A stretch of DNA of 64,000 nucleotides from the NCBI GenBank assembly GCA_002104945.1, contig MCFH01000060.1, positions 248,001 through 312,000 of the forward strand. Direction: 5' to 3'. A program made the translations under genes and the position numbers. The notes beneath the pieces were generated by a model, which saw only the letters and a program-made list of their open reading frames with translations, ran no database searches and was not told the origin of the DNA. Position 1 is the first letter of the stretch. The number at the start of each line of letters is the position of its first letter. The DNA is from Piromyces finnis finn. Taxonomy: Eukaryota > Fungi > Neocallimastigomycota. Shown here one piece after another: positions 1-64,000 of this stretch.

Positions 1-579
1 TTCTTTTTTTTCCTTCTTCTTCTTCTTCCACTTTTTTTTTTTTTTTAAATTGTTTGGTTTTTTTTTCCAAAAAACTTTCAACTAAAAAAAAAAAAACGGA
101 AAAAAGGTGGAAATTTTTAAATTAAAAAACAAAATAATAATTAAAATTTTAAATTAATTTTTTTTGTATGCGGAATAATTTTTTTAAAAAAAAAAAAAAA
201 GAAATGGAAAAAGTAGTAAAATGTTAATAAAAAAAAACAAAAAAATTGTTTTTTTGTTTTTAATAATAGAAAATGTTATAAAACTTTTATTATACACCAA
301 AAAAAGTTTTTATTTTTCTAAAAAAAAAAAAAAAGTTAAACATTTAAATAAATTATATTTTTTATTTGTAATTGAAATGAATATTAGATTAGGAATACAA
401 ATCAACTAGTTACTTTATTTTATTATAAAATTATGGTTTATAACTTTACAAATTATAGAAATAATTGTAAAAATAAAAATAATTACAATAAAAATAAACC
501 ATTTTTTATACTTTTTATAAAACTTATATTAATAATTTAAAATTATATTTTACAAATAATACTAGTTAATTTTATGTAT

Positions 580-1530
580 CTATGGATTAATATCTTATTA
601 ATTAAAAAAACATATAAATAGAAATAGTTTTGAAAGATGAATAGATAGATCCGTTTAAATTTCTTTTTAATAATAAATAAGGTTTACTAAGAATATTTGA
701 TTTTAATAGTTCTATGGATGTTTTACATGGATAATAATAAAGAATAAAAATGAGGATTTATATATTACACATAATGGATTGTATTGTTTAACAAATGCTC
801 ATCTACCCGCAATTAATACTTTATTTATCTGATGTTTTTGATTCATGTGTAAATTTTTTAAGTTATCATCCAACAGAAACTGTTATGATGCATTTAAAAA
901 ATGATGCCGTACCAAAAAATTTTGAAAAAAAAAAAAAGTGATAATTATAAAACAATAATGGAAAAAGTTGAAAACTGTATTAGTAAATATAAAGATTATT
1001 TTTATATTGATAATTTTATGCCAAAACTTGGTGATGTTAGAGGTAAAATTGGTATTCTTACACGTGAATAATATTTGGGACTTAAAATGCCAGTAAAAGA
1101 TATGGTGTGCATGACATGTTTATAATAATAAACAGAAAGATAATGATTATTGTCTTGTATATAAATCATTTAATTATTTAGTTTATAGGAATTAACACTA
1201 ATAAATATGAATCTTTAGAATGTAATTATATGATTCAAGATGCTTATAATTTAGATAGTCCTGAAAAATGGGATCTTATATATATATTTCATTAACAAAT
1301 AACTTACATTCTACTTGTGAAGTAAAAAAATCCAATCTTAGTTTAAATTTCATGAATGTAACGAGAATGGATCTTGATAATGGGTTTTGGAATGCTGTTG
1401 GAGATTTCTTTTTTTTGATACTGATATAGAAGAATCGGCAAATTATATAAATATTAGGTTTCATGTGAAATTGTATAAATAAAAGAATAATTAGTAATAA
1501 TTATTTCATATGGATTGATTTCATGAAAAA
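580..1530 (+). pseudogene. Decayed bacterial-type PI-PLC X-domain (PLC-like phosphodiesterase) gene
   Basis: Manual translation gives fragments broken by stops and frameshifts: EDLYITHNGLYCLT (~752), YLSDVFDSCVNFLSYHPTETVMMHLKND (~825-905), YFYIDNFMPKLGDVRGKIGILTRE* (961-1071), MIQDAYNLDSPEKW (~1230) and NLSLNFMNV (~1335). They occur in the order and style of PI-PLC X-box motifs (HPxETV, PxLGxVRGKI, xQDxY). Boundaries are approximate. Confidence 0.65.
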
Positions 1531-1671
1531 AAATATTTATTTAAGGAATAATAATGAATTCTATAATTATATTCTATTTTATTTTATTCTATTTTATTAT
1601 ATTACATTTAAAAGTCTTAAAAAAAATATAGCAAAAGATGAAGATAACTTTTGTTTTATAACAATTAATAT

Positions 1672-4425
1672 TCATAAAATTCTTCTTCTTATGGTTTTAA
1701 TTATATTTTTGGATAACCTTTTTTTTTTAGAAAGGTTTTTGGGTTTTTTATCGCTTATTTTTAGAATGGATTTTATTTTTTTCAATACTTTTTTTATTAG
1801 AGTTTCTTTTTTATTTGTATCTTGACTTTTAGTAATAGCATAATTTGAAGAATTTTTAGTATTAAGAGTGTTATTTATATCATTATCATTATTTTCATCA
1901 TAGATAGATATAATATATTCATCCCTATTGATAGTATTTTCTGGTTTATCCATTTTGTTAGATTGATTGTTATTATACGATATGATATTGGTTTTGGTTT
2001 TATTTGCTTTCTTTTCATTGCCAACAACAACAACAACAACGTCATCATCATCAACATTATCAATAATAACGTTGTCATTATGACTATTTTTATTATTATC
2101 ATTATTATTGTAACTATTCGATAGGGATATGTTTATTTTCTTATTAGTACCAACATTACTATCAATTTGGTGAAGATGTTGATTTGATTCTACTGATTTT
2201 ATGGCCAATGATTTTTCACCTTCTTCAGTAATATATTTACTATGATCCTCTTCTTTTCTAGTATCGTCAATATTATCATCCATTTCAATAATATGAATAT
2301 TGGACTCTATAGTTTCTTCTTCCTTTAAGCTGCCTTCTTCATCAGTAATAGATTCAGCATTATTAATGGTATCAATGATTTCAATGATTTCACATCTTAC
2401 ATCATAGTTATCATTACATAGCTTTATACTATCTTCAATATTCTTTTTATGCTTTTCATATTCCTCCTTACTTGCATTATAGTTATAGTTCACAAAATTA
2501 ATTTCTGAGGAGCACAGATCTATTATATAATTTTTATAATCTGTTATTATTTTATTAACCTTTTCTTTTTGGAAAAGGATTCTTTGAAGGACTAAAAGAT
2601 CTATACCCAAATGATTAGGGTATAAATCCTTTTCCTCTTTAAGATCATTAAATTTAATTAATTCCAAATGTTGCATAATTTTCTTTTGACAGGCTTCATT
2701 GTTACTAAGATTCCCAACGATTAATTCAGTGATAGCATCATTTAAATTTTGTATATTTTTCGAAATATGTTGATCGATAATTCTTTCAGTTTTAAATTTT
2801 TTTCTAATTCCAATAGCAAGCTCTTGAAGACTGGACATAGATTTTATTCTATCCTTTTCGATCATTTCATCACTATCAAACATTTTCAAATTTGATTTAA
2901 TACTGTTTTCTTCAGTATTTAATAATTTTATATTTTCTTTTTTAATATCTCTTATAACTCTTCCTTTGTAAATATCCACTGTTAAAATACCATTTTCATC
3001 GATATATAGGTTAATAAAAATATTAATTATACAAGAGCTAGGCTCTTTGATGGGAAATGAATTTATACTATTTAGTAAACTTCCTTCATATATGGAATAG
3101 GATAAGAACATTGATTTGTTTTGTGGATTATAATCTACAGTAAAATGTTTATTATTTTCCGTTGGGATGGTAGAGTTACGTTTAATAATTGTACTTTTAT
3201 ATCCATTTTTAGTTTTTACACTTAAAGAATAAGGAATAATTTCAGATAGGGTAAAATTTTGTAAGCTATCCAAGGCATTTCCAGAAAGAATGGCTGCTTG
3301 TATTGTGGCTCCATTAACAACGGCTTCATCTAAATTAACTGTTTTATTTATTGGTTTTCCATTAAAATAGGATGATATTATTTCTTGAATTATCGGAATA
3401 CGAGTTGAACCACCTACAATAACAAGTTCATCAACATCACTTGTTTTTAATCCGGAGTCCTTAACAACCCGATCAAGTATTTCTTTAATTCTATCAAATA
3501 ATGAAGCATTCAGTTCTTTAAATTCGCTACGAGTTATTTTTTTTGAAAAATCAAAAGGTTCTTCTTGAAATAAATCTTCAACATTAATAATAGTGTCTTT
3601 AAATGATGTAAGATTACATTTAGCCTTTTCACATGCATTTCTTAATTTAAGTAATGATTTTCGATTAGTAGAAATATCAATTTGATATTCTCTTTTGATT
3701 TCTCCAATGAGATAACCAACAAGGTTATTTGTCAGATCTTCACCACCCAAGTGAGTGTCACCTCCGGTTGCCATGACTTTAAAAGAGCTACCATTTTGAA
3801 TATCTATGATAGAAACATCAAATGTTCCACCCCCAAGATCAGCAATTAATATTTTTTGATTTTTAGTATTATTGTTAAGAACATAATTTATGGCAGCAGC
3901 AGTAGGTTCATTAATAATTCTTAAAACATTTAAACCAGCCAATTTTCCAGCATCTAAAGTTGCTCTCCTTTGAGAATCGTTGAAATTAGCAGGAACAGAG
4001 ATAACAGCATCAGTTATAGTTTTATTTAAATAATCTTCGACAATACTTTTTATTTTTGAAATAAGCATAACATATATTTCATCTGGAGTAAGTAACATTT
4101 CTTCATTTTTATAATTTATTTTAAAATAAGGTTTTCCATTTTCTTCAGTGACGTTGAAAGTTAAATAGTTTAATTTATTTTGAATTTCTTCAAATGAACG
4201 TCCTATAAATCTTTTAACTCCATAAATAGTATTTTCAGGTTTTATTCTTGCTTTATCAAAAGCTTCTTTACCAAATAATCGTACATTTTCACAAAACGAT
4301 ACGTAGGATGGCATTGAACGGTTAAAATATATTTCAATAACTTCTACATGATTATTTTCCCAAATACCAACACGGATTTCAGTAGTTCCAAAATCAATCC
4401 CAATAACAAAGTTTTTTTTTGTCAT
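1672..4425 (-). CDS. Hsp70-family protein, 917 aa, intronless. Intact ATPase domain, divergent substrate-binding region, long low-complexity C-terminal tail, no EEVD.
   Basis: ORF motifs GIDFGTT, TDAVISVPANFNDSQRRAT, LRIINEPTAAA, DLGGGTFDVS, GDTHLGGED, VGGSTRIP and DEAVVNGA. Confidence 0.93.
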   Translation of the reverse strand: MTKKNFVIGIDFGTTEIRVGIWENNHVEVIEIYFNRSMPSYVSFCENVRLFGKEAFDKARIKPENTIYGVKRFIGRSFEEIQNKLNYLTFNVTEENGKPYFKINYKNEEMLLTPDEIYVMLISKIKSIVEDYLNKTITDAVISVPANFNDSQRRATLDAGKLAGLNVLRIINEPTAAAINYVLNNNTKNQKILIADLGGGTFDVSIIDIQNGSSFKVMATGGDTHLGGEDLTNNLVGYLIGEIKREYQIDISTNRKSLLKLRNACEKAKCNLTSFKDTIINVEDLFQEEPFDFSKKITRSEFKELNASLFDRIKEILDRVVKDSGLKTSDVDELVIVGGSTRIPIIQEIISSYFNGKPINKTVNLDEAVVNGATIQAAILSGNALDSLQNFTLSEIIPYSLSVKTKNGYKSTIIKRNSTIPTENNKHFTVDYNPQNKSMFLSYSIYEGSLLNSINSFPIKEPSSCIINIFINLYIDENGILTVDIYKGRVIRDIKKENIKLLNTEENSIKSNLKMFDSDEMIEKDRIKSMSSLQELAIGIRKKFKTERIIDQHISKNIQNLNDAITELIVGNLSNNEACQKKIMQHLELIKFNDLKEEKDLYPNHLGIDLLVLQRILFQKEKVNKIITDYKNYIIDLCSSEINFVNYNYNASKEEYEKHKKNIEDSIKLCNDNYDVRCEIIEIIDTINNAESITDEEGSLKEEETIESNIHIIEMDDNIDDTRKEEDHSKYITEEGEKSLAIKSVESNQHLHQIDSNVGTNKKINISLSNSYNNNDNNKNSHNDNVIIDNVDDDDVVVVVVGNEKKANKTKTNIISYNNNQSNKMDKPENTINRDEYIISIYDENNDNDINNTLNTKNSSNYAITKSQDTNKKETLIKKVLKKIKSILKISDKKPKNLSKKKRLSKNIIKTIRRRIL

Positions 4426-5261
4426 ACTATATATTTATTTTTTTAATAATATTTAATTATACTTTGTGTTTTAAAGGCTATTATTATAAAGATTGTTTAA
4501 ATTTGAAATTAAATTTGAAAAAAAAAAAAAAAGAAAACTTTTATTTTATATAAAACCATTTATTAATATTTTTAAAAATGTCTAGTTTTTTAATATTTAT
4601 TTAATCTTCCAATAAAAATTAAAAAATCAAATTAAAAAAAAAATTAATTATAAAAATGGATATACCTTTTTTTTTTTTTTATCAAAACTTAGTCAACGGT
4701 TTTTAATGTCTTTTTTTATTAAATAAAAAAGAAAATATAAATTTGATATATACATTGGATATATTAGACAAAAAAGTATTTATTAAAGTGTGTGTTTTAT
4801 GTTGTACTAATAGTACAATATTAACTGTTTATTTACTTATTTTTTATTAAACAGAAAAAACTATTTCGAAAAAAAGAAACTTTCTTAATTAAAATTATTG
4901 TATTTAAAAAAATAAAATTTAATTGGACACAAAGGAAGAAGTACACCTTCAAATTTTAATTTTATTATTTTATTTTATGCAAAAAAAAAAAAAGTAAAAT
5001 ATAAATGATGATTTCACTCGTAATTCTTCTTTAAAAATAATAGAGTTTATGATTAAAAGAATAAAAAAATAATAATATTGATTATTATATGAATAAAAAA
5101 AATTGTTTTAATAATTATGGTTTAACGATTTATCTTTACATTATATAAATATATTATATTTCTTTATAATAATGAAAAATGATTTTAAAATATATATAAT
5201 ATAGTTATAACAAATATAGTTTTTAATAATATATCTTTTTTATACAAATATTTTTATTTAT

Positions 5262-5780
5262 TTACCAACCACCAAAACCACCGGGTCCTCTATTATTATA
5301 TTTCATTTGATTTTGAGGATTTCCATAAATATTTTGTGGTGGTAATGGAGTTTGTTGGTAAATATTTTGACCATAGATATTTGGATTAGGTTGATTGGAA
5401 TAGTTAATTTGGGAAGTCTTTTGCTTCTTAACCTTCTTCTTTTTCTTTAATTGTTTACGAAGCAACCAAACAACAGCTCCACCAATTAAAAGTTTCTTAC
5501 CGATACCACGTTCACCGGTAGCAGGTTCAATTAAACCTCTATTTTGAGCTTCTTCAGTGGTTAAGATAGTACCATCTTCATCTTCAATATAATCCCCATC
5601 ATCATCCGTAATATATTCATATTCACTTTCATCATCCGCACCATTATAATTGTTATAAGTATTATAGGTATTGTTGAAACCACCTGGTTGTGGCATTTGA
5701 TAACCTCCTTGTGGCATTTGGTAACCTCCATATGGTGGTTGTGGTGGGAATCCACCTTCTGGTTGTGGCATTTGGTACAT
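5262..5780 (-). CDS. Orphan Pro/Gly/Gln-rich protein with acidic EYEY core, Gly-rich hydrophobic helix and polybasic patch (paralogue of 7570-8190)
   Basis: The 172-aa ORF shares a near-identical ~70-aa core (EYEYITDDDGDYIEDEDG...QNRGLxEPATGERGIGKKLLIGGAV...LRKQLKKKKKVKKQK) with the neighbour, with many synonymous differences. Confidence 0.8.
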   Translation of the reverse strand: MYQMPQPEGGFPPQPPYGGYQMPQGGYQMPQPGGFNNTYNTYNNYNGADDESEYEYITDDDGDYIEDEDGTILTTEEAQNRGLIEPATGERGIGKKLLIGGAVVWLLRKQLKKKKKVKKQKTSQINYSNQPNPNIYGQNIYQQTPLPPQNIYGNPQNQMKYNNRGPGGFGGW

Positions 5781-43576: not shown

Positions 43577-43658
43577 CGTCACCTGCAGGACTCGAACCTG
43601 CGCTCCCAAAGGGAAATGGCTTAGCAGGCCACCGCGTTAACCACTCCGCCAAAGTGAC
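43577..43658 (-). tRNA. tRNA-Ser(GCT), 82 nt, long variable arm
   Basis: Reverse complement GTCACTTTGGCGGAGTGGTTAACGCGGTGGCCTGCTAAGCCATTTCCCTTTGGGAGCGCAGGTTCGAGTCCTGCAGGTGACG folds as a cloverleaf with anticodon GCT and discriminator G73. Confidence 0.97.
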
Positions 43659-44941: not shown

Positions 44942-46098
44942 TCAATGTAATATAATTAATAATAGTATTATAGCGGAGCTTTTGTTTACTTTTATTTTTT
45001 CTAACTTATTTAGGTTTCTATTAGAGGTTTTATCATCCTCAAATAAGTTAGATATTTTATTGATAAATTCATTATAAGATAGGGATCTATCTTCATAATA
45101 AATATCACTACAAAGATCCTTTGAGTTACCGGTAGTAGCAAGCAAAGCAATTCTCTTCTTTTCTTTTTCAGAAAGAGCTAAGTCTTCTAAGATATCTTCA
45201 AGTTCCATTTTCCATCTGAAGAACTTAGTATCTTTCTTGCCAAGAGGGCTTATTTCTTTAGCCATACTAGCGGCTCTTTCAAAATTGTTTTTATTTTCAG
45301 TCATATTTAGTAAATAAATAAGATAATTATACTAAATATACTAATTAATAGGAATTATTTAAATTTTCGGCTTTCCCACGGGACGACTGAGGTTCTCCAC
45401 CACTTGATAACGGATTGGTAGTTATATTACAACTTTTTAACTACTTCTTCTGTTATCTTATATTGTTTTATCTCGACAGCTATTGTACGAGCTTTAACAA
45501 TATCTACTAGTTTTATTAATTTATTTTAAGTTATTTTATAATTTTAATAGTTTTATTATTTTAATAATATTTATATAGAATAATAACACCAGATTTATTC
45601 TATAAAATATTATTTATTATTAACACAATAATTACAAATTAGACAAGTTTAATTTCGTTTTTATATTTTCTTTTATTTATTGTTCTTACGCTCTTTTTAA
45701 CAATAATTTTTATTATATAAAAACTTATTTTTTGTCTTTTAAATATTATTATGTATTCACTAATTAATTATATTAACTATTATTAAAATTTAACTTATTA
45801 TTAGTAATCTAAGTCTTCTTATTTTCTACTAAAAAATATTATTATTCTTTATATTAAAAATTATTTTTATAATTTAACCCAATCAAATATATAAATTTAT
45901 AAAATATTTGATTTTATGTAAATTATATTTTTATAATAAACTATATAAAATTATTTAATAATTATTTTATAATAAAAATTTCTACTAATATCAAATGTAT
46001 AATATATTTATAATTATTATTTATCATAAATTTCCGTGAATTTTTACTAGAAAGTGATATAAACTAAAATATTGAATATAATCTAACCTATGTTATCA
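44942..46098 (-). mobile_element. Truncated LTR-retrotransposon relic: putative 5' LTR (45405-46098), tRNA-Ala PBS (45385-45402) and gag fragment (44942-45304)
   Basis: Candidate LTR termini TGATAAC...GTTATCA, followed after 2 nt by TGGTGGAGAACCTCAGT and a gag-like ORF (FFRWKMELEDILE...YNEFINKISNLF). No pol or second LTR is seen. Confidence 0.55.
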
Positions 46099-47004
46099 TT
46101 ACATTCATCAGCACTTTCAACTTAATTATCCTTTTTTTGTTTACAAAAGTATATAAATTCATAAAATTATTAATATTAAATTTTTATATTTAATTATTTT
46201 TCTTGAAGATTATAAATTAGTTAGTTAATAAACTAATTAGTTAATGATCAATAACATTGTACAAATTTTACATATCAATATATTTTATTAATATATTGAT
46301 TTAGATCTAGATATTTTCAAAAAAAAAAATAAAATATTTACAAAATATTTAAAATATTTGCATATAAATAGTTATTTTGTTTTTAATACTTGTTTGCAAT
46401 CGGAGATTACTTCTTATTAATGTTTATTTATTTAATATATTTATATTAAATTATATATTAATTTTATATTAAATTTTGTTATTAATTTTTTTATTGGCTT
46501 TTTATTTAGAAATAATAAAAAATATCTTTTTTTTCTTCAATAAAATAAAATATTAAATAATATAAAATAATATAAAATAAATGAAATGTTTTCTTTGATT
46601 TAATTTCAAATAGCCAATAGGTGAATTTAAATAAATTGAAATGTTGTTTTAATTTATTCTTAAAACTTTGTTTTTATTTTTTTTATTTTATTATTAAACT
46701 CTTTTTTATAATGTTTTGATATATTAAATTTTTGATTTTTATAATTCTTAAAGTTGCATAGGAGAGAATATAAATACAAAGCCATTGTTCTCTTTTTTTT
46801 CTCATTTTATTTTTAAAACAATAGCTTTAATTTATTTTTCAATTTCTTTAATTTTGTCCTACTAAATTTAAATTAAAAAAAAAGAAAGAAAACAATATCA
46901 TTTTTAATTTTACATTGTTCTCATTGTGTTTTCATTGTCTTCAAAGAACAATATAATTCAATTTTAATAATATTTAAAATTCCAACATTTTATCTTTGAC
47001 AAAA

Positions 47005-48736
47005 ATGAATGATCTTTGCTCTTTAGAAAAGTAAGTATTATAAGTATTATCATCCATTATTCATTATTCATCACATTTCAATTATCAATTATATTTAATA
47101 CTTTAGTAGATCTAATAATATTATAAATATTTATAAATAAATGTTTATTTATTTAATTATATTATTTCTAACATAATTATATTATTATTTTTATTCTATC
47201 TATATATATCTATATATAATATAATTTTTATTATTTTTATTATTTTTATCATTATTATTATTTTTATCATTTTTATTCTATCTATATATTCTTTATATTA
47301 ATGAATAATAATCGAAATTCAAAATTTTTAGTCCACTTAATGCATATCTTTTAAAGCAAGAAGAATTTAAAAGATACATTAACGATATCCATCAATCTTT
47401 AAATTCAAAAGAATATCTTAATCAAGGTTATAATCTTGATGATTATGTAAAATCAAAATGGAATATTTCAAAGTAAGTAAAAATAAAAAATATAAAATAT
47501 AAAATGGTATAAAGTATATATAAATTATTAAATATTTTAAATAATTAATAATATTATATTTTATTATATTTTATTTATTATATTATAATTTATAGAACTC
47601 AAGCCTATCGTTATTTACTTTGTGCAAAAATTATTGATCAACTTGAAGAATTTAAAATTCAACCAAGTATGTATATTATATGTATATTAAATAAACATTA
47701 TTTTATTATTAAATATATATATAAATATAAATATATATAAATATAAATATTTAAATAAAATGAATAAATACTAATATGAAATTTCAAAATAATTCAAGAT
47801 TATGAACGTTTATGCAGATCTTTAAATAAATATGCTAAAACTACTCAACAAATAAAACTTTTATGGGGAATGATTCTTAAGAGGGTGAATAACAATGTCG
47901 ATTTGATTACAAGTACTTTGGTTTCTAGAATTTGGAATGAACTTTGTAAAGACAAGAAATATTCTCATATATGTCATTATGAAGAATCAATCATGAATAA
48001 AATTGAAATGACCATTAAAGAACATTCAAAAAAGTCAAAACAAAGCCAATTAAAACCAATAAATATTAAAAGAAAAAATTCAAATTCATATGATCATCAT
48101 AATCAAAATGAAATTCAAAATGAAAACAATAATTGCAATAACTGCAATAACTACAATAACTGCAATAAATACAATAATAATGAAACTAGAACTACTTATT
48201 TAACTAGAACTACTTATTTAATATCACCAAAAGATTCATCTTATATTCATGAAATTTCATCTCAATTAGTAATCATTCCATCGAATGATAATATTTGTAA
48301 AAATATTAATGAAAATATTAAAATTAATCAATATAAAATTGATGATCAATATGAAAATAATGAACAATTTTTATTAATTAACAATAGCGGCAACAATAAT
48401 AACATTTTTTCTTTATCTCCAATAATTTCCGAACCTTCACTTTCTCCATCATCTTCCTATTCATCTTTATCACCATTGACCCCAAATGATGAAATAATCA
48501 TAACACCAACAATTCCAAGTAATGAAACTATGTTCACTCCAATAGTTTCAAGTAATGATGATGTCTTTACTCCAATAATTCCAAGTAATGAAACTTCAAT
48601 GAATACTTTTTCTTCCTATCCAAGTAATGAAATTAATTTATTATCCATTGAATCTAACCAATATTACAATGAAAATCAAAACATTCCAATTTATTATACA
48701 ACTCCAAACAATCAACAAACAATTTTGTATTATTAA
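47005..48736 (+). CDS. Four-exon lineage-specific gene, copy 2, ~391 aa. Exons 47005-47030, 47332-47472, 47596-47666, 47799-48736.
   Basis: GT-AG splicing yields MNDLCSLEN-PLNAYLLKQEEFKRY...DDYVKSKWNISK-TQAYRYLLCAKIIDQLEEFKIQPN-YERLCRSL...KLLWGMILKRV... All exon lengths preserve the frame. The first exon is the least certain. Confidence 0.75.
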
Positions 48737-50144
48737 ACATCTTATTTTTTTGGAAATTTTTATAATTGAAAAATAGAAATTTTATAAAATTACTATTATT
48801 AATACAAAAATTCTTATTAGAATTAAAAAAAAATAGAAATGTTTAATATTAATTTACTTTTAATTAATAAAAAGAAATCATTAAGAAAATAATTTATTTA
48901 AATTGTTCATAATTGTAGTAATAATAAAATGTTTAAATTAATTACAAATTATAAAAAAATGTATAAGTATATATATTACTATTATAAATTACTTATAAAT
49001 ATTTAAAAATAAATAAAATTTCATTATTATTATTAGCATTAAAGAAAAAACTTATCATTAATTACAAACAAAAAAAATAAAAAAAAAAATTAGTAATTTT
49101 ACTTTTTTCTTTTTTAACAATAATGAAAAAAAATTGTGGCTTAAATAATTAAATGTAAATCAATTAAAATACATTTAATCAAATTACGTACATTATCAAT
49201 TAAATACAATTATGTATGTATGAAAATATAAAAATGCTAAACTATTAATAATAATAACTTGATGTGATTAATAAGTATTTAGTATTTTATAATTATTTAT
49301 TATTTTTTTTCTCTTTTATTAATAATATAATATTTTAAAAATAGCTTTTTTAATATGAATTTAGCAGCAACAATATAAATGACAATTTTTATTGACCATT
49401 TTTTTAATTATATTAATTTATGAAAAAAAATCTATTTTTAGGTTAATTTTCAAATAAGAAATTTTATTGGGAAAAGTAAATATAATTAAAAAAGGAAAAT
49501 AGAAAATAATCTTTTTTTTTTTGAATTAATTATATGAAATTTTAATTTTTTATTTTTAAAAATAAATGTTTAATATTCAATAATATTAATAAAAACTTAT
49601 AATTAGAATATTTATATATTTATATAATATATTTATTACAAACTTCTACTAAAAATATAAAGTAATGAATGTTAATTAATTAATAATTAATTAAAATATA
49701 AAAATATTTTTATAAATTATCATTAAAAAAACTATTTCATTAATTTATTTATAAAAATATATCTTAATTAATAACATAAAAAAGTATATATAAAGAGTAT
49801 TTTATTTCTTTCCTTTTTTTTTTCTTCGTGCTTTTCAAATATAAAAAAGTATTTTTAAATACTAAAAAAAAAAGAAAATCACCAATTATTGTTAAGAATA
49901 ATTTATCTCATTTTTCAACTTTTTTCTTGATGATGTTTATATACCCTTTATAAATTTCATTATGAAATTTAAAATATAAAAATATACCCCTAAAAACTAC
50001 CTTGAAAAAAATTTAAGTAACTGATAAATTATTCAACTATTTTTTTAGTTAATAAAAAAAAATAAGATTTCTCAAATGTGTTATTTAGAGCTTGCTCCCC
50101 AACAATATTTTTTATATAATTCAGTAAAAATCGGAAAGTGATTT

Positions 50145-50755
50145 GGTACAAAAACAAGGCGGATTCTCTAGAAGATGAATTGACTAGCGCTTGAACCAAA
50201 TTAAATTCTTTCTCACATAGAAAAAAGATTTTAGGTACAAACTTAAGGCGGATTCAGTATCTTTTTATTGTTTGATACATATAAAAGAATAATGAATTGT
50301 CGTAGCGCTTAAACCCAAAGTCTTAATTAAAAAGAAAAATATGGTATATCAAGAGCGGATCATGTTAAGAAATATTATGATTGACTAGCGCTTGAACCAC
50401 TTTTTTTTAATAATAATAACATTATATATAATAATGGTAAATGAAAAAATTAAAGGTACAAACTCAAGAGCGGATTCAAATCAATAAATATTCATTATTT
50501 TTGATAAAAAAATAATTATTATTTAATCAATGAATTGTCGTAGCGCTTGAACCTTTAAAATATAATAAATATATTATATTTATAAAAAAAATATGAGAAA
50601 GTTTAAAAAAAGAGCGAATTAAATGTAATGTTAATTGTCTTAGCGCTTTTTGCTTTTTTATATTTTTTATTACTATGGTACAAACTCAAGAGCGGATCCA
50701 TATAGTAACAAAAATAAAAATTATTAATTATGGATTGTCGTAGCGCTTGAACCAT
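50145..50755 (+). ncRNA. Tandem array of six conserved bulged stem-loops (candidate novel structured RNA)
   Basis: Units at 50145-50197, 50234-50315, 50343-50398, 50455-50553, 50598-50656 and 50677-50753. Consensus GGT-N(4-7)-CAAG(A)GCG-GATYC-[variable]-GRATT-G(T/A)C(K)TAG-CGCTTG-A-ACC, with multiple compensatory substitutions. The structure is well supported; RNA identity and strand are inferred. Confidence 0.7.
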
Positions 50756-51154
50756 ATTGAAAAATAAATTAAATAATAAATAAAATAATAAATAAAAAAA
50801 AGTTAAAAAAAATTTTTTTTTTTTAATGTGTTGAAATTTTATTAATATTTTTTGCTGATTTTGAGATAAGTAGTTTTTTTTTTTTTTTTTTGAGTATTAT
50901 ATAAAGTTATTATAATTTGCTAAATATTAAAAATTATTATTTTTAAAACTTGTTTTTGAAACTTGTTTTTGAATAAAAAGATTACTCTTTAAACAAAAGA
51001 AAATTTTAATTTTATATCAAAAAAGAGCTTAATTTATGTTATTAAAATAAAAACAATGAAAATAAAGGAATAATATTTCATTTATATAGAGATATTTTGG
51101 TTTATTATGAAAAAAAATATTAATTTTTTATTGAATAAATATAGAAACTAAAGA

Positions 51155-51950
51155 TTTTATTAAAATTTGTTATGAATACCCAGAGTTTACCTATGGTTTC
51201 TACTGGCTATTAAAAGCAGAAAGTGGATACAAGTTGGATTATAGAACTGCAAAAGCTGCTAAATTTGTTGATCCAACTTGTCCTAACTACTACTGTCCAT
51301 GTTGCAAGAGTTGAGATCAAAGTATTAATCATTAGTTATTAGATTGACTAGCTTTTAGAGATATCTGTATTAAACATTAAAACTCCATAGTCCAACAATA
51401 AAATTTTTAGTCAACGTAATTCCAACAATCCTATCAATAATGATGAAAATATTAATATCAGTAGAGATAACAATAATATTAATAGTAATAGTAACAATAG
51501 TAACAGTACAAATAGTAATAATAATAATAGTAGTAGTAGAAGTAATAAAAAGTTTTAACAATATCAATTGCAATTCAAGGGAATAGAAAGAACTTTGCAA
51601 GTGTCAAATTCAATCGGGCATTTACGAAGGAACACCATTCTTGACGGTAACAGCGGAATTTCTAACTAAAATCATGCCTTTTGCTATTAGCCAGCAATGG
51701 TCAATGTTCAAAAGGTTTGAATCAACATCCAAGAGCGTCAATGCTGAAGAAACAGTAAGACAGGCCAAGAGGGCCGCAACCAATGGCGATCATAATTTTG
51801 TTCCATGACAAAATTTTGATCTTTGGCTCGGTGTCCCATTGGAAGTCAAATACAATTATTATACTTTAGTATAATAGTGGCTTTCTTACTTTAATTAAAA
51901 TTACTATAATACATTATACCCAATTTTTATTCATTTGTGTTTATTTAAAC
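51155..51950 (+). mobile_element. Degenerate 3' fragment of a non-LTR (LINE-like) retrotransposon, copy B
   Basis: YPEFTYGFYWLLKAESGYKLDYRTAKAAKFVDPTCPNYYCPCCKS*DQSINH*LLD*... ending in ...RAATNGDHNFVP*. Homologous to copy A, which lacks a ~170-bp segment present here. Confidence 0.65.
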
Positions 51951-52113
51951 ATATTTTTTTTATTTTTATTTTTATTTTAATTTTTATATTACATGTATTA
52001 TAATTTTAATTAAATTAATAATAAAGTTTAAAAAGATTTGATGCAGTTAAAAAAAATGGATAAATATATAAATTTAAACAAAAATAATAATAGAATACTT
52101 TTTGTTTTATACA

Positions 52114-52117
<4 letters not shown>

Positions 52118-52210
<93 letters not shown>
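52118..52210. repeat. (ATT)n microsatellite
   Basis: Directly visible. Confidence 0.95.
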
Positions 52211-52211
<1 letters not shown>

Positions 52212-52411
52212 TTTAAATATTAAGTAATTATTAAATAAAAAATTACATTATAAATAAAAACTTTCATATATACAATATTGTTTAATAAATATCTACAAAT
52301 TAATAATATATAAATTCTTAATAGACACTTTTATAATAATAAAAAATATATTTAGTATTTATATATTATATTTGAAATTTACAATAAAATGCATATTTAA
52401 TACACAATTTT

Positions 52412-54144
52412 TCATTGATTTATATAATAAATTGGAATATTTTGATTTTCATTGTAATATTGGTTAGATTCAATGGATAATAAATTAATTTCATTACTTG
52501 AATAGGAAGAAAAGGTATTCATTGAAGTTTCATTACTTGGAATTGTTGGAGTAAAGACATCATCATTACTTGAAACTATTGGAGTGAACATAGTTTCATT
52601 ACTTGGAATTGTTGGTGTTATGATTATTTCATCATTTGGGGTCAATGGTGATAAAGATGAATAGGAAGATGATGGAGAAAGTGAAGGTTCGGAAATTATT
52701 GGAGATAAAGAAAAAATGTTATTATTGTTGCTGCTACTGTTAATTAATAAAAATTGATCATTATTTTCATATTGATCATCAATTTTATATTGATTAATTT
52801 TAATATTTTCATTAATATTTTTACAAATATTATCATTCGATGGAATGATTACTAATTGAGATGAAATTTCAGGAATATAAGATGAATCTTTTGGTGATAT
52901 TAAATAAGTAGTTCTAGTTAAATAAGTAGTTCTAGTTAAATAAGTAGTTCTAGTTTCATTATTATTGTATTTATTGCAGTTATTGTATTATTGCAGTTAT
53001 TGTAGTTATTGCAGTTATTGCAATTATTGTTTTCATTTTGAATTTCATTTTGATTATGATGATCATATGAATTTGAATTTTTTCTTTTAATATTTATTGG
53101 TTTTAATTGGCTTTGTTTTGACTTTTTTGAATGTTCTTTAATGGTCATTTCAATTTTATTCATGATTGATTCTTCATAATGACATATATGAGAATATTTC
53201 TTGTCTTTACAAAGTTCATTCCAAATTCTAGAAACCAAAGTACTTGTAATCAAATCGACATTGTTATTCACCCTCTTAAGAATCATTCCCCATAAAAGTT
53301 TTATTTGTTGAGTAGTTTTAGCATATTTATTTAAAGATCTGCATAAACGTTCATAATCTTGAATTATTTTGAAATTTCATATTAGTATTTATTCATTTTA
53401 TTTAAATATTTATATTTATATATATTTATATTTATATATATATTTAATAATAAAATAATGTTTATTTAATATACATATAATATACATACTTGGTTGAATT
53501 TTAAATTTTTCAAGTTGATCAATAAGTTTTGCACAAAGTAAATAACGATAGGCTTGAGTTCTATAAATTATAATATAATAAATAAAATATAATAAAATAT
53601 AATAAAATATAATATTATTAATTATTTAAAATATTTAATAATTTATATATACTTTATACCATTTTATATTTTATATTTTTTATTTTTACTTACTTTGAAA
53701 TATTCCATTTTGATTTTACATAATCATCAAGATTGTAACCTTGATTAAGATATTCTTTTGAATTTAAAGATTGATGGATATCGTTAATGTATCTTTTAAA
53801 TTCTTCTTGCTTTAAAAGATATGCATTAAGTGGACTAAAAATTTTGAATTTCGATTATTATTCATTAATATAAAGAATATATAGATAGAATAAAAATGAT
53901 AAAAATAATAATAATGATAAAAATAATAAAAATAATAAAAATTATATTATATATAGATATATATAGATAGAATAAAAATAATAATAAAATTATGTTAGAA
54001 ATAATGTAATTAAAAAAATAAACAATATAAATCTACTAAAGTATTAAATATAATTGATAATTGATAATTGAAATGTGATGGATAATGAATAATGGATGAT
54101 AATACTTATAATACTTACTTTTCTAAAGAGCAAAGATCACTCAT
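52412..54144 (-). pseudogene. Four-exon lineage-specific gene, copy 3, frameshifted and 3'-truncated
   Basis: Near-identical to copies 1 and 2. It has a 1-bp deletion in the NNC/NNY repeat at ~52988, a third 18-bp RTTYLT unit, and homology ends at ~52425. Confidence 0.8.
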
Positions 54145-56077
54145 TTTTGTCAAAGATAAAATGTTTGAATTTTAAATATTATTAAAATTGAATTGTATTG
54201 TTCTTTGAAGACAATGTAAAATTAAAAATGTTATGAATGTATTTTGTATTGTTTACTTTCTTTTTTTTTTTAATTTAACTTTGGTATGACAAAATTACAA
54301 AATATTTACAAAATGGAAAAATTTGAAAATAAAAATTAAAGCTATTGTTTTAAAAATAAAATGAGAAAAAAAAGAGAACAATGGCTTTGTATTTATATTC
54401 TCTCCTATGCAACTTTAAGAATTATAAAAATCAAAAATTTAATATATCAAAACATTATAAAAAAGAGTTTAATAATAAAATAAAAAAAATAAAAACAAAG
54501 GTTTAAGAATAAATTAAAACAACATTTCAATTTATTTAAATTCACCTATTGGCTATTTGAAATTAAATCAAAGAAAACATTTCATTTATTTTATATTATT
54601 TTATATTATTTAATATTTTATTTTATTGAAGAAAAAAAAGATATTTTTTATTATTTCTGAATAAAAAGCCAATAAAAAAATTATAACAAAAATTAATATA
54701 TAATTAATATATAATTTAATATAAATATATTAAATAAATAAACATTAATAAGAAGTAATCTCCGATTGCAAACAAATATTAAAAATAAAATAACTATAAC
54801 CATTTATATGAAAACATTTCATGAATATTTTAATTTTTTTTTTTTTTTGGAAAATATTTTCGAATTTCATCTTCTAGACTTTTAAATCAAAATCAATATA
54901 TTAATATAATATATATTTAATAAAATTATGAATAAACTAATTATTTCACCATTCACACATTTTTATTTATTTATGGGAATTGCAATATATTATCAATATT
55001 TTCACTAATTTCTCCTTTTTCAACTTCATAGGGTTTAGAGTTATGTTGATCACTATTAAATAAACTATTTTTATTATCTCTATTATTATCATTGTTGTCA
55101 TTGCTATTATTTATATTATTATTATCAATTATTTCAATTGGCGATTTTAGTGAATATTCAAAATCATGAATTGAAAATTGATCAAGGGATTAAATAATAA
55201 TATGTATAATATGATATTTCAAAATAATTATAAAAATAGATTTTTTTTTTATTTTAAAAATAAATTTAAATGATACGGAATTTTAATAAATTTTTCAATA
55301 TTTTCACATTTTCCTCTCTAAGTATTATTAATTATTTGATATAGCATTAAATTATTTAAATAATATGCTTTTATAAAAAAATAAAATTTAGTAGTATGAT
55401 ATTCAAAAGTAATAGTTTATTATAATAAGTATTACTAATGTTTCACAATAAAAATAAAAGAAATAATTATAAAATATATATAGTAAAACAAGAATGTATA
55501 ATACTTTTTCTATATATTTTTATTGTAGAATATCAGTAAATAATATATATCTTAAATATCTTAATATATAATACTATAATTATTTTTATTTTGTATTATA
55601 AAATCAACTTTGTAATAAATTATTATGATAAAAAGATAATTATATTAATTTAAAATAAAAAATAAAAGCATATGAATTTTAATTAGTTTAATACTTAATT
55701 TAAATATTTTATTTATATTTTAATTCATTATTTAAAATTTATTCATAATTTTATTAAAATATATGTTATATTAATATATTGATTTTGATCTAGAAGTCTA
55801 GAAGTTGAAATTTAAAAATATTTTCCAAAAAAAAAAAAAAAAATTAAAATATTCATGAAATGTTTTCATATAAATGATTATAGTTATTTTGTTTTTAATA
55901 TTTATTTACAATCGGAGATTATTTCTTATTAATATTTATTTATTTAATATATTTATATTAAATTAGATATTAATTTTATATTAATTTGATTTAGGATTAA
56001 TTTTTATTAAATACAATTAAAAAAATAATAAAATAAAAAAGATAATATATATAAAAAATATAAAACAAAAATTAAAA

Positions 56078-56159
56078 CGTCACCTGCAGGACTCGAACCT
56101 GCGCTCCCAAAGGGAAATGGCTTAGCAGGCCACCGCGTTAACCACTCCGCCAAAGTGAC
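56078..56159 (-). tRNA. tRNA-Ser(GCT), identical to 43577-43658
   Basis: Same 82-nt sequence. Flanks 55988-56185 match 43487-43684. Confidence 0.97.
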
Positions 56160-57426: not shown

Positions 57427-57432
<6 letters not shown>

Positions 57433-60400
57433 ATAAGCGATATCAATAGGCTTCCTATTGTTCTTTAAATATAATAAGAAGATATTTTGGTTTCTTGGGT
57501 TATCTTCAACTTCACTAGAAGGAACCCAATTATATTGAGAACGGTATTTGTATCTAATTTTGTATTCATACCGTTTAAGTTTATAATTAGTTCGAAATCC
57601 CGCAATCTCAATGATATCTTTAATTGATTCGGGATCCTTTGCTCTTGATAAAAATCTTGAAGGAGTAGGAATAAAAGGTTCAAGTTCCGAAATATGGAAG
57701 ATTGGATGATGTTTTGGGAAAGGAGAGTTGTGTATATCTATTTTATAATTGTTATTTTCCAAAACATATAAAACTTTATAGGGTCCATATTTACAAGGAG
57801 AAAGTTTTGGAGTTTCTTCCGTAGAAAAGGATGGAGGAGCTTGAATCCAAACTTTATCGCCAACTTTAAATATAGGAGGTGACATCCTTTTCTTATCGGC
57901 ATGTTTTTTATATAAATCCTTGGCTCTAAATAAAACTTCTTTAACATAATTAAAATTATCACAAACATTTCTAATAAAATTATTATTAGTATAGGATTTG
58001 TCATAAAGAAAAACATCATCAACAGGAGGGTGGAATCCATAGTTAATAAAGAAAGGACTTTGTTTGGTAGACTCATTAATAGAATTGTTATAAACAAATT
58101 CGGCTAAGTGAATCCATTCAACCCAATCATCATGATAATAGGACTTTGAATAACAGCGGAGATATTGTTCAATAAAAGAGTTACATCTTTCAACTTGCCC
58201 GACCGTTTCATGATGATCAGTGGTAGCAATTTTAGTTTTAACTTTAAGTTCTTCCATTAAATTATTCCAAAGATCACTAGTAAATTGAGAACCACGATCA
58301 GTATAAATATCAGAAGGCAATCCATGAAGTTTAAATATATTTTTAATAAAAGCTGTAGCTGTTTGTTTAGCATCGGGTATTTTCTTAAAAGGAACTAAAT
58401 GAATCATTTTTGAAAATCTATCTACAGTAACCATTAGAACAGTATATCCTTTAGAATCAGGTAAACCACATAAAAAGTCAATTTCAACAGAACGCCATGG
58501 TCTATCAGGAGTTTCTAAAGGTTGTAAAGGACCATATTTTTTGTGTTTATTGAATTTGTTTCTAGTACAAGTTTCACAAGAATTAACAAATTCAGTTACA
58601 TCTTTATGAATTTTTGGCCACCAATAGTTTCTAGTAATTAATTCTTCAGTTCTTTTAATACCCAAATGACCAGCAGCAGGATTTTCATGGTATCGCATTA
58701 GTACTTCTAATCTTAAAGCTTCAGGAATATATATTAAATTATTATAAAGAATCATATTATTTTGAATCTTGAATTTATTCATTTTCCTAAAAGGTTTATA
58801 AAAATAACCTTGATTAGCATTATTTGGTGCAAAATATAATCTAATATCATTTGCGGTATCATCTGTTTTAGTATATTCAATAACTTTATCAATAAAATCA
58901 CTAAGAATTCCCACAAAACATGGAATATTTTTAACATTTTTTATATCTAAAATATTCTCAGGTTTAATTTGTTCATTACCAGAATTATAATCAGGTCTTC
59001 TAGAAAGACTATCAGGCTTACCATTTTTTCTTCCTTGGCGATAAATTAATTCAAAATCATATTCCTGGAAGAAGAGATGCCAACGATGTTGACGTTGATT
59101 TTGAATTTTTCCACCTAAAGTATAAAGTAAATTACGGTGGTCTGTATAAACTTTTACTTTAAATTTAGCACCTAAAAGTAGATGTCGCCAAGCCGAAAAA
59201 GCAGATTTAATAGAAAGAAGTTCTTTATCTGTAATAGAATAATTCCTTTCTGTATCATTTAAACTTCTGGAAAAATAAGCAACAGGATGTAGTTTTTTAT
59301 CATCATCATATTGAGATAAAACGGAACCTATTGCGAAATTACTGGCATCACATTCTACTATGAACGGCCTATTAGTATCAGGAAAAACTAAAACGGGAGA
59401 AGTAATTAATTTATTTTGTAATTTTACAAAAGCATCATCACATGTCTTATCCCAATGAAATTTAGCATTTTTCCTAGTTAAATTATGTAAAGGTTTGGCA
59501 ATTTTTGCAAAATTATTAACAAACCTTCTATAATAATTACAAAGACCAAGAAAGCGTTGAACATCTTTAACACATTTTGGTCTAGGCCATTCTTTAATAG
59601 CTTCGATCTTCTTTGGATCAGTAGAGATACCATTACTTGATATAGTGAAACCTAAGAATTCAACTTCATTTTTATGAAATTCACATTTTTCAAATTTTGC
59701 ATATAAGTTGTTTTGTATTAATTTATCTAAAACAGATCTTACATGGTTGATATGATCGTTGAGATTTTCTGAGAAAATTAAAATATCATCCATGTATAAA
59801 ATAACAAATTTATCCAAATATTCGCGTAATATTGAATTTATGAATGATTGGAATGTTGCTGGAGCATTTTTTAATCCATATGGCATTACTAAATATTCGT
59901 AATGGCCAAACTTTGTTCTAAAAGCGGTCTTATATTCATCACCTTCTTTTATTCTTATCAAATTATAAGCTGATCTCAAATCTAATTTAGTGAAAATTTT
60001 TGAACCCCTAACCCTTTCAATGATATCTGATATTAAAGGTAAAGGATACGAATTCCTTACTGTTACAGAGTTTAACTTTTTGTAATCAATACAAACCCTT
60101 AGTGAGCCATCTTTTTTCTTCTGGAAAACAACAGGATAACCTGCAGGAGATTCAGAGGGTCTAATAAAACCTTTTTTAAGATTTTCATTAATATATTCTT
60201 GTAAGGCTTCTTCCTCTTGTCTTGACAAAGGATAAATAGGTCCATAATGTAAAGTGGCATCATTTTCTAGGACTATTTTACAATCAGTTAAACGGTGTGG
60301 AGGTAACTTATCAGCTTTTGATTTGCTGAAAACAACAGCAAGATCTTTATATTCATTAGGGATATCATCCATGATAAGGGTTAGGTCATTTTCTTCATCA

Positions 60401-61113
60401 TCTTCAAAATTTTCGATATTTTCAGATAAAAATGAATGGATAAAATAATTGATATCACTCTTATTAGAAGACATAGAACTATTATCTTTAACTTGAAGAT
60501 TAGATTTATGAGAGAAATTAGTAGAATTATTATTAGTATTATCGGAAAATGAATAATTAAAATCTTTTTTAGAATGAGAAATTTTTAAATTTTTTGAAAA
60601 AATTTTTAAATTCTTATTATTGAAGTGTTTAAAATTATTACAATATAAATGATTATTTTTATAATTAAAATGAATCTTAAATTTCTTCATGAATTTATTT
60701 CCAAATAATAAATCCATAGGAATATGTTCTGAAACTAAGAATTTTTCTTTAAAAGATATAAAATAAAATTTGTTTTTGATAAAAATTTTTAATTGAAATT
60801 TTAAATAAACATAATCATTGATATCAGTAGTAAACCCACTAATACCTTTTATAATCAATTTGTTTTTTAATTTTCTTTTAATTAAATTATATTTTTCTAC
60901 AAATATGGTAGAAATAAAGTTGCATGAGGAACCTGAATCAAGTATTGAATTACAGGTTATTGGAGAATTGGTAATAAAATTAGAGTTGTTATTTAGAAAT
61001 TCTTTAGGAATATATGAGTTAAAGGTTAAAAATGAATTTAAATTGGGATTTTCTTTGTTCTCTAGAGATGGGAAATTATAATAAATAATTTTTGGTGTAT
61101 TATGAACATCCAT
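57427..61113 (-). CDS. Ty3/gypsy pol polyprotein (PR-RT-RNase H-IN with a chromodomain-like tail), element 1. The true N-terminus is probably reached by frameshift from gag.
   Basis: ILDSGS protease, RT LDLRSAYNL and YMDDILIF, RNase H CDASNFAIG, integrase HHCC plus DFL/TDRGSQF/GQVER, and the GPY/F motif. Uninterrupted 1228-aa ORF. Confidence 0.96.
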
Positions 61114-62432: not shown

Positions 62433-64000
62433 CTAATGTGAATTATTAAAGTTTTTAATTAGTTCATCGCAGTTTAAATTACTTTCAGGTTCCCAAGATG
62501 CTTCTGAAAGCGGATAACCTTTCCATTTTATTAGATATTGAATCTTCCCATAATGCTTTCTTTTATCAAGTATTTCTTCTACTTCGTATTCTTCTTCTTC
62601 ATTTACTATTATAGGTGGAGGTGGATCTTTGATTCTTCCAAAACTATCTTCATAATACGGTTCTAGGTTTGAAACATGAACAATTGGGTAAATCTTCAGC
62701 GATTTTGGTAATTCTAATTTATAAGTGAGATTAGAGATTTTACTAATTATCCTAAACGGGCCAAGTTTCCTAGGATTAAATTTTTTATTTCCTTTATGAA
62801 TTATCAAGGAGCTATCCAACCATACTTTGTCACCAGTCTTGAATGTCGGAGGTTCTTGTCTATACTTGTCGGCATATTTCTTTTGAACTTGGATGGCCTT
62901 CTTTAAGTTTTCTTTTAGTTTCTCCATTAGGTCTTCAAAGTCTCTTGTAAACTCTTCAGCTCTTGGAACATTCGTTTGGTCAGGAATTACCGGAGAGTAT
63001 TTTGGGTGATAACCATAATTTAGGAAGAATGGTGAGAATTTTGTTGAGTCTTGAACAGCATTATTGTAACTGAATTCTGCCAATGGAAGAAAGTTGATCC
63101 AGTTTGTTCCTTTATAATTAGAAAAGCATCTTAAATATTGTTCAACAACGGAGTTTACCCTCTCCGTTTGGCCATTGGATTGATGATGATATGGTGAAGA
63201 ATATTTAACATTGACGTCCAAAGATTGACAAATAGATTTCCAAAATTTCGAAGTGAATTGCGCGCCTCTATCGGAAATAATTTCAGAGGGGAGACCGTGA
63301 ATTTTGAAAATATAATTCAAAAAAGCAAAAGCAGTATCAGAAGCAGAAGGAATACCTTTAAAGGGAATGAGGTGGCACATTTTAGTAAGGCGGTCAACTA
63401 CAACAAGAATAGTGTTAAATCCATCCGAAGGAGGGAGGTCAGTAATGAAATCCATAGAAATAGAAGCCCAAGGATGGTCACTAATCTCAAGGGGTTGAAG
63501 TAAACCATATGGTTTATGACGAGAAGGCTTGGAGCGGCAACAAATCTCGCAAGATCGGATATAATTCTTAACATCAATAGAAATGGATGGCCACCAAAAG
63601 TCACGAGAGATCAAAGAAATAGTTTTGCGGATACCAAAATGACCGGCAGAGGGGGAATCATGACAGAGTTTCAAAACGGAGGGACGGCATTTTAAAGGGA
63701 CATAGATTCTACTATCAAAAAGAAGAAAACTATTACTAAGGGAGAATTTATTACTTTGTGGATGTGGAGCTGGGAGATTCTTATTTTCAAGAAAATTGCA
63801 AATGTCAATGTAAAAAGAGTCGTTCACATATTCAGATAATATTTCATCATTAAGAGAAGAAATGGAACAAATCAAAGCGCAGAAATTCTCAGGGCGTAAA
63901 ACCGAAAAAGGAGCATCAGAAGGAAGAGAGGAATCCATATAATCAGGTCTTCGTGAAAGCGCATCAGGTTTACCATTAGATGAACCAGAGCGGTAGAGAA
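62433..64000 (-). mobile_element. Second Ty3/gypsy chromovirus: RNase H end, integrase and canonical chromodomain (continues beyond the window)
   Basis: The frame is open from the window edge (YRSGSSNGKPDALSRRPDY). Motifs: HHCC, SMDF/SDRGAQF/GQTER, GPFRI and EYEVEEILDKR...YLIKWKGYPLSEASWEPESNL. Confidence 0.95.

Follow-up and report, generated by a model that had tools for sequence, protein, structure and literature searches.

What kind of genetic element is formed by two short half-motifs that alternate six times in very AT-rich DNA: a structured RNA, a set of DNA hairpins or a repeat without a product? The question is raised by positions 50134–50762 (plus strand) of the window, that is, the whole stretch of 64,000 nucleotides analysed here, which has a GC content of about 20% and whose protein genes are eukaryotic or fungal (Hsp70, a kinase, a chitin-binding protein, and Ty3/gypsy elements). 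Six hairpin modules, each made of two half-motifs, were found at these positions. If they belong to an RNA, it must further be asked from which strand it is made, whether it falls into a known family, and what it might do.

The array and its locus in the window

The 5′ half-motif, GGUACAAACUCAAG(A)GCGGAU, is followed after 9–65 nt by the 3′ half-motif, AUUG(A/U)C(G)UAGCGCUUGAACC, and this arrangement occurs six times in 50145–50755, exactly as had been described in a reading of the sequence alone. The same six units were recovered on the plus strand by R1, a covariance model built from relatives of the window array. The 3′ half-motif TAGCGCTTGAACC, with one mismatch at most, had five matches in the window, all of them in the array and on the plus strand; about 0.11 matches at up to two mismatches are expected from shuffled sequence. 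When the whole window was searched with R1 with the filters off, exactly six plus-strand units were obtained, and the sole further match above the E = 0.01 threshold was a 22.2-bit echo of unit 2, read on the minus strand. The default filters of cmsearch missed all the window units, and the unit scores given below come from filters-off runs. The motif is absent from the rest of the window and is thus confined to one locus, far above chance. The features of this locus are as follows, all on the plus strand.

49919–50010 (+): E0, a K-turn hairpin of C/D-box-like type whose relative position is shared by 11 loci
50064–50102 (+): Box, 39 nt, AAGAUUUCUCAAAUGUG..GCUUGCUCCCCAA, conserved in nine aligned loci, apparently single-stranded
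50134–50206 (+): unit 1, type A, 3′ bulge GACUAG, tail AACCAAA (49.7 bits)
50223–50324 (+): unit 2, type B, 3′ bulge GUCGUAG (92.9 bits)
50332–50407 (+): unit 3, short type A with a cut-down 5′ internal loop, GGUAUAUCAAG (32.0 bits)
50444–50562 (+): unit 4, type B with a long apical hairpin, orthologues in relatives (83.7 bits)
50590–50662 (+): unit 5, divergent, GAGCGAAU...AUUGUCUUAGCGC, A/U-only outer helices (20.9 bits)
50666–50762 (+): unit 6, type B, terminal, tail AACCAUA (82.8 bits)
50763–50810 (+): A-rich tract with several AATAAA signals, where the transcript probably ends and is polyadenylated

The array makes up the 3′ two-thirds of a longer conserved locus, which comprises E0, Box, the hairpins and the AATAAA signals. 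The surroundings, which had been described as otherwise featureless, must be revised in this respect, since E0 and Box precede the array. Both elements keep their fixed position in 9–11 loci despite different neighbouring genes, and no conservation was observed past the A-rich tract, 3′ of the last unit. No pairs were predicted in the consensus structure of Box from the nine aligned loci. In E0, a terminal stem encloses a C box, UGAUGA (49928–49933), an internal hairpin that covaries (AAAUUUC/GAAAUUU) and, at 50002–50005, a D-like UUGA; the alifold prediction comprised the terminal stem, with two pairs changed on both sides, and the internal hairpin.

E0 resembles a box C/D snoRNA in its terminal stem, in the adjacent C box UGAUGA (found in 10 of the 11 loci and replaced by UGACGA in L033), in the GA-containing box that precedes the 3′ strand of the stem and in its length of about 90 nt, and its C box is that of the box C/D class. 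However, the canonical D box, CUGA, was absent from the 11 loci, where UUGA (nine loci), UCGA (L014) or AUGA (L033) was found instead, with the GA retained. Moreover, C′ and D′ boxes were not recognisable in E0, its two conserved "guide" stretches are able to pair with each other, and no match was obtained with the snoRNA families of Rfam.

The locus lies in a unique centre of 3.7 kb that is flanked by the arms of an inverted repeat of about 2.3 kb (46339–48704 and 52417–54848, 97–99% identity). An N/S-rich open reading frame of 288 amino acids is intact in the left arm (47870–48736, plus strand), and the same frame is in two pieces in the right arm (52936–53286 and 52412–52645, minus strand). 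Two tRNA-Ser(GCU) genes with identical scores (43577–43658 and 56078–56159, minus strand) lie within direct repeats of 82–96% identity, 12.4–12.5 kb apart (42000–42414/54386–54797 and 43467–43698/55968–56199), and this segmental duplication is interlaced with the inverted repeat. Retroelements abound in the region, with Ty3/gypsy-type pol frames encoding reverse transcriptase, RNase H, integrase and a chromodomain at 57430–61113 and 62436–63938 (minus strand), and a small gag-like frame with a weak PNMA match at 44942–45304 (minus strand). Located 390 nt 3′ of the array, an open frame of 56 codons (51144–51311, plus strand) that ends in ...DPTCPNYYCPCCKS had no Pfam match and resembles the terminal exon of a gene for a short, cysteine-rich protein. 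A long (ATT)n microsatellite occupies 52085–52218.

Fold and conservation of the module

Relatives of the array were sought in a metagenome collection with the pattern ATTGWC(N)TAGCGCTTRAACC, which returned 41 contigs. In about 20 of these contigs, with a GC content of 17–38%, both half-motifs were paired on one strand, mostly several times. Each of the high-GC contigs held one isolated match that was devoid of the 5′ motif and scored at most 17.4 bits with R1 (L015); these were chance matches, as were 19 single matches in prokaryotic genomes (at most 20.5 bits). Among viral contigs, only one isolated single match was found, on a contig equal in length to that of L012. On one of the related contigs (L002) lies a gene for an Agd3-like deacetylase with a CBM_10 fungal dockerin, and dockerins of this kind are a distinguishing feature of anaerobic gut fungi. 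Within the collections searched, the RNA gene would be confined to genomes of the anaerobic-gut-fungus type (Neocallimastigomycota-like).

Read from the outside inwards, the module begins with helix P1 and continues with a 5′ internal loop of 7 nt, ACAAACU, which faces a single A, then P2 (CAA/UUG), a bulge of G or GA, P3 (GCG/CGC), an invariant 3′ bulge (GACUAG, 6 nt, in type A and GUCGUAG, 7 nt, in type B) and P4, in which an invariant G·U, an A-U and a U-A pair are followed by a covarying extension and a variable apex. The sequence-only reading had delimited the outer stem as GGU/ACC. This stem is present, but it is longer than proposed, with 4–6 additional covarying base pairs that run into the supposed linkers. 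In unit 3 the 5′ loop is short and variable, and ACAAACU is therefore dispensable in some modules.

The compensatory changes first noticed by eye in the window are present, namely UAA/UUA in unit 2, the A/U-only outer helices of unit 5 and the inner stems GAUUC/GAAUU, GAUCAU/AUGAUU and GAUCCAUA/UAUGGAUU. The relatives allowed the pairing to be quantified. In the MAFFT alignment A3, which contains 20 type-B units and was not fitted to R1, 97.1% of the cells paired, compared to 45–46% when the partner was slid by one column; seven pairs were changed on both sides, and the covariation score was reached by none of 500 shuffles. In the alignment of 68 units, which was fitted to R1 and thus leans towards the model, 93.4% of the modelled cells paired, compared to 42–47% with the partner column slid, and changes on both sides were found in 14 of the 21 pairs (197 cells). 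The MAFFT alignments A1 and A2, which misplace the 1-nt bulge difference between the two types, were left out of the pair counts. In a test free of any alignment, the 5′ and 3′ inner-stem strands of the same unit gave a mean uninterrupted pairing run of 6.8, as against 4.7 when the two strands came from separate units. The folding energies of single units were weak (z from +0.2 to −2.9), and the structural support thus comes from the comparison with relatives and not from thermodynamics. Neither a pseudoknot nor tertiary covariation was found in the modules.

The order of the units was constant in every sufficiently long contig: units 1 to 4, optional extra pairs, unit 5 and unit 6. The array has six modules in the window and four to nine among the relatives, through duplication of A+B pairs. 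The units are recognised in the relatives by the following traits.

Unit 1: type A, bulge GACUAG, tail AACCAAA
Unit 2: type B, bulge GUCGUAG, P2 UAA/UUA, tail CCUGA or CCUAA
Unit 3: type A, short, 5′ loop shortened and variable
Unit 4: type B, long apex, tail CCUUUAAA
Extra units: one or two added A+B pairs in some contigs (L005, L009, L039)
Unit 5: divergent, outer helices A/U-only
Unit 6: type B, tail CCAUA

In the window, the outer stem of unit 1 continues through UUUGGU/ACCAAA and GAAAG/CUUUC, and the signature of this unit was repeated in the orthologous first unit of 14 loci. Unit 2, with UUGUUUGAUACAU at its apex, has UAA/UUA in place of CAA/UUG, and the same replacement was seen in the second unit of every locus for which both strands were present, except L027 (5′ side GUAAGG). 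The orthologues of unit 3 are short without exception, with an insert of 9–21 nt and a variable J1/2. The tail of unit 4, AACCUUUAAA, pairs with UUAAAGGU. A divergent module of the unit-5 type lies at the same position in L009 (1256–1330), where the outer stem is different yet complementary, and the AACCAUA/G tail also closes the last units of L009, L005 and L039.

The apical inserts had been described as free and unrelated between units. The apex is variable, but not all the inserts are free: AUGUUUGA(A/U)ACAU was kept at the tip of unit 2 in orthologues from nine contigs, and UUUGAU at the tip of unit 4 among its orthologues. Since unit-specific signatures and tips are kept in this way, the duplication that gave rise to the array must be old and each unit separately constrained; the conservation of order and signatures across species likewise argues for non-redundant units within one RNA.

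The genes next to the array vary from locus to locus, with the Agd3-like deacetylase/dockerin gene in L002, a profilin gene in L005 and an unannotated frame of 400 amino acids on the opposite strand in L026. The array was considered as the UTR of an adjacent gene; this was ruled out because the neighbouring genes differ between loci, which indicates that the array is a gene in its own right. Three contigs showed rearrangements. L037 (1051 nt) carries two complete 5′ parts (E0, Box, and unit 1) head to head, at 411–500 (minus strand) and 663–746 (plus strand), and these form a divergent pair of array RNA genes. In L033, a satellite of AAACTTAAATTAAACTTAAAACTT-like units (800–1104) begins right after unit 4. 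On the reverse strand of L023, past unit 3, the 5′ half of unit 4 runs directly into a sequence with a resemblance, by eye, to the coding region of ribosomal protein L13e; this junction probably reflects a misassembly that produced a chimera at the repeated motif.

Strand, transcription and known classes

The modelled pairs of the R1 alignment comprise 143 G·U cells versus 12 A·C cells, and pairing falls from 93% to 82% when the opposite strand is read. The large excess of G·U over A·C and the fall in pairing on the opposite strand point to selection on the plus strand as RNA, in line with the strand preference suggested by the sequence-only reading. The AATAAA signals located 3′ of the last unit agree with this orientation. 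The asymmetry also argues against sites in duplex DNA, single-stranded DNA or cruciforms, so that the single-stranded DNA hairpin proposed there as an alternative is disfavoured. Folding of the whole locus did not discriminate between the strands (z of −3.7 for the plus and −3.9 for the minus strand).

In four RNA-type runs of the same organism, from three studies, 66–87% of the sampled words of 50000–50900 were found, the kind of run being guessed ("RNA?"), and 42% were found in a metatranscriptome. The contigs from the RNA runs were colinear with the genome over 49860–50405, with no joints and no differences; splicing of the array RNA was considered and rejected on the absence of joints. The word depth of these contigs was about 450–5600 per contig, a value that is not normalised as a measure of expression. 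A control stretch in the upstream intergenic region (48900–49590) was found in a DNA run only, and therefore carry-over of DNA fails to explain the coverage in the RNA runs. E0 and Box were both covered by RNA contigs, which started at 49920 (the start of E0), at 49896, at 49864 and upstream of 49860, and thus reach at least 55–75 nt upstream of E0; the ends of contigs are not ends of RNAs. Among the loose ends in the RNA runs, a second, differing copy of unit 1 was found for the same organism, indicating that it expresses at least two paralogues. By a rough inference, the array transcript would end near 50790, with which the word coverage of 50000–50900 in the RNA runs is consistent. The RNA gene thus measures about 0.9 kb on the plus strand, from 49864 or before to about 50790. 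Taken together, these data establish the structure of the module, its conservation, its strand and its transcription.

Conservation acting at the DNA level, or a mobile element, could be suspected for a sequence that is present in at least two copies in the organism, that has different neighbouring genes at different loci, an A-rich tail and head-to-head copies in L037, and that lies at the centre of an inverted repeat of 2.3 kb in the window. The conserved sequences would then be inverted-repeat binding or recombination sites, an origin- or centromere-like element or a transcribed SINE- or MITE-like repeat. However, the 12:1 ratio of G·U over A·C is the mark of selection on a single strand of RNA and not of selection on the DNA duplex, and the spacing of the half-sites, from 9 to 156 nt, is unsuited to a DNA-binding dimer. 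The array copies share only their structured cores; spacers and apices have diverged freely with the pairing kept, unlike recent transposon copies. Furthermore, neither terminal inverted repeats nor target-site duplications were noticed at the loci examined, a search that was not genome-wide, and the RNA coverage was specific to the locus. We thus consider an explanation at the DNA level to be most improbable.

No family was found to which the RNA could be assigned, as had been anticipated from the sequence alone. At the gathering score, Rfam 15 matched only the two tRNA-Ser genes of the window, outside the array. With E values up to 10, only weak chance matches (10–19 bits) were obtained for 49800–51000, and no consistent family for six related loci. 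ARAGORN found tRNAs in the window solely at 43577 and 56078, none being in the array; a tRNA- or acceptor-like helix, GGUACAA/UUGAACC, was rejected on this negative result and because the compensatory change in unit 2 supports CAA/UUG. None of the hairpin units contains a C box RUGAUGA or a D box CUGA, as would be expected of box C/D snoRNAs. Their internal loops are one-sided (7/1 and 0/6–7 nt) and invariant, and no ACA follows the units, which does not fit H/ACA snoRNAs. A miRNA-like cluster was not recognised either, since no arm of about 21 nt was conserved in the units: conservation lies at the base of the hairpins, and also at the tip in units 2 and 4, and the arms between base and tip vary in sequence and length among orthologues. 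Likenesses to the K-turn, loop E, the U1A site, Y RNA (UUGACUAGC), 7SK and the U3 box A were rejected, as none fits the invariant nucleotides of both types and none had an Rfam match. The module and the locus were not described in the literature searched on non-coding RNAs of anaerobic fungi. The array RNA is thus probably a new RNA family, which may have a known mode of action, as an RNP scaffold or a small-RNA precursor.

Each module could also be a new class of self-cleaving ribozyme, or an aptamer for a metabolite or ion, in which docking between the two invariant unpaired elements would create a core. Small ribozymes and aptamers generally combine invariant unpaired nucleotides with covarying stems, and the module does so too, with about 40 conserved nucleotides around short helices and a variable apical stem; its units are, moreover, in tandem. 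Nevertheless, no ribozyme or riboswitch model matched with E values up to 10, among them hammerhead, twister, twister-sister, pistol, hatchet, hairpin, HDV and VS ribozymes. The conserved 5′ loop is missing in unit 3, no covariation indicative of a pseudoknot or tertiary contact was found, and the RNA contigs, which are insensitive to partial cleavage, cross all the units examined with neither breaks nor fixed loose ends. We thus regard this explanation as very unlikely. If the modules were a new ribozyme or aptamer fold, they would be the first tandem array of such a kind in fungi.

At this point, none of the observations that had been named as speaking against a new functional RNA was made: no confident Rfam hit was obtained, no transposon terminus was noticed at the loci examined, covarying homologues are present in about 20 metagenome contigs, and the array is carried by contigs of RNA runs, the adjacent intergenic DNA being in the DNA run only. 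The proposal of a structured RNA is therefore upheld.

Possible roles and known systems

We propose, with a confidence that we put at roughly even, that the locus encodes an abundant, lineage-specific structured lncRNA of anaerobic gut fungi that acts as a multivalent RNP scaffold. In the order of the transcript, this RNA would consist of the C/D-box-like K-turn hairpin E0 at its 5′ side, the single-stranded Box, the six modules and a tail with poly(A) signals. The invariant unpaired nucleotides of the modules may be recognition sites for one protein, or for a pair of proteins specific to types A and B, so that the full-length RNA could serve as a multivalent scaffold or sponge. E0 may bind K-turn proteins of the Snu13/L7Ae type, which would protect the 5′ part or target the RNA to the nucleolus, as in snoRNA-capped polyadenylated lncRNAs. 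This proposal is based on the fixed order and signatures of the units, on the abundance of the unprocessed RNA, and on the analogy with two established systems, the snoRNA-capped polyadenylated lncRNAs and the A-repeat of Xist. We give about even odds to the idea that the array RNA serves as the RNA component of a new, abundant RNP restricted to anaerobic gut fungi.

Alternatively, the 0.9-kb RNA could be a polycistronic precursor that an endonuclease, of the RNase III type or another, would cut at the base of P1 to release a new class of small RNAs of 60–150 nt. Each unit is indeed closed by its own long covarying P1, which reaches the short unconserved spacers, the number of units varies from four to nine among relatives through duplication of A+B pairs, a C/D-like element is on the same transcript, and the architecture is like that of fungal and plant polycistronic snoRNA and miRNA clusters. 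In these clusters, too, several units with short spacers are carried by one Pol II-type transcript, and E0 has C/D features. However, their units differ in the guide or mature sequence and share the boxes only, whereas those of the array share a core of about 40 nt, vary at the apex and have no C/D or H/ACA elements and no conserved 21-nt arm, the last being expected for a miRNA-like product. Two further observations do not favour processing: X2 and X5 contigs have about the same depth over the spacers and the upstream region as over the units, suggesting that the unprocessed RNA is itself abundant, and the order of the units is fixed with their specific signatures conserved. Contigs from standard RNA-seq are, however, blind to the release of small hairpin RNAs. 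We consider a precursor to be rather unlikely. Of the functions that the sequence-only reading had listed, a scaffold (or sponge) and a precursor are thus the ones favoured, a ribozyme is the case discussed above, and recombinase sites are disfavoured.

It could also be argued that the hairpins do no more than direct 3′ processing or termination of the upstream C/D-like RNA, or stabilise it, and that E0 is the true product. The array is always preceded by E0, and the conserved motifs contain the words GUAG and CUUG, which are similar to the sites of Nrd1/Nab3 known from the terminators of yeast snoRNAs. But Nrd1 and Nab3 bind single-stranded RNA, and GUAG and CUUG lie here inside conserved helices and bulges. 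In addition, the array exceeds E0 in length, conservation and structural complexity, and its RNA is no less abundant than the E0 part, although terminator regions are normally degraded. This role for the hairpins is therefore given very little credence.

The locus provides a large non-coding RNA that is backed by covariation, abundant and multi-copy, with invariant unpaired nucleotides in four to nine modules, the identity of each being kept across species. To our knowledge, few large non-coding RNAs of eukaryotes have a structure with such backing, and hardly any have been described from early-diverging fungi. The kept identity of the modules implies a specific partner and a function worth preserving throughout the fungi of the rumen and hindgut, which are of biotechnological interest for the breakdown of lignocellulose. 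The 45-nt core offers a concrete object for tests, and R1 is ready for the annotation of gut-fungus genomes. If E0 caps or targets the RNA, the principle of the snoRNA-capped lncRNA would be extended beyond mammals.

The first of the systems that supply the analogy is that of the SPAs and sno-lncRNAs of the human Prader-Willi region. Like the gut-fungus RNA, these have a 5′ C/D-box element on a long, unspliced and probably polyadenylated non-coding RNA, the body of which holds many putative protein-binding sites, and their proposed role is to sequester or scaffold RNA-binding proteins. Unlike them, the gut-fungus RNA has contigs that extend upstream of E0, a non-canonical D box and covarying hairpins in place of short linear motifs; the lineages are unrelated and there is no sequence similarity. 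The second system is the A-repeat of Xist, in which six to nine conserved, GC-containing tandem cores are likewise set in AU-rich variable spacers of a lncRNA, and in which hairpin-forming cores are thought to recruit protein in a multivalent manner. The gut-fungus units have no sequence similarity to Xist and differ from its repeats in being split-motif hairpins of 60–170 nt with four helices and strong covariation, each of them individually distinct and orthologous across species.
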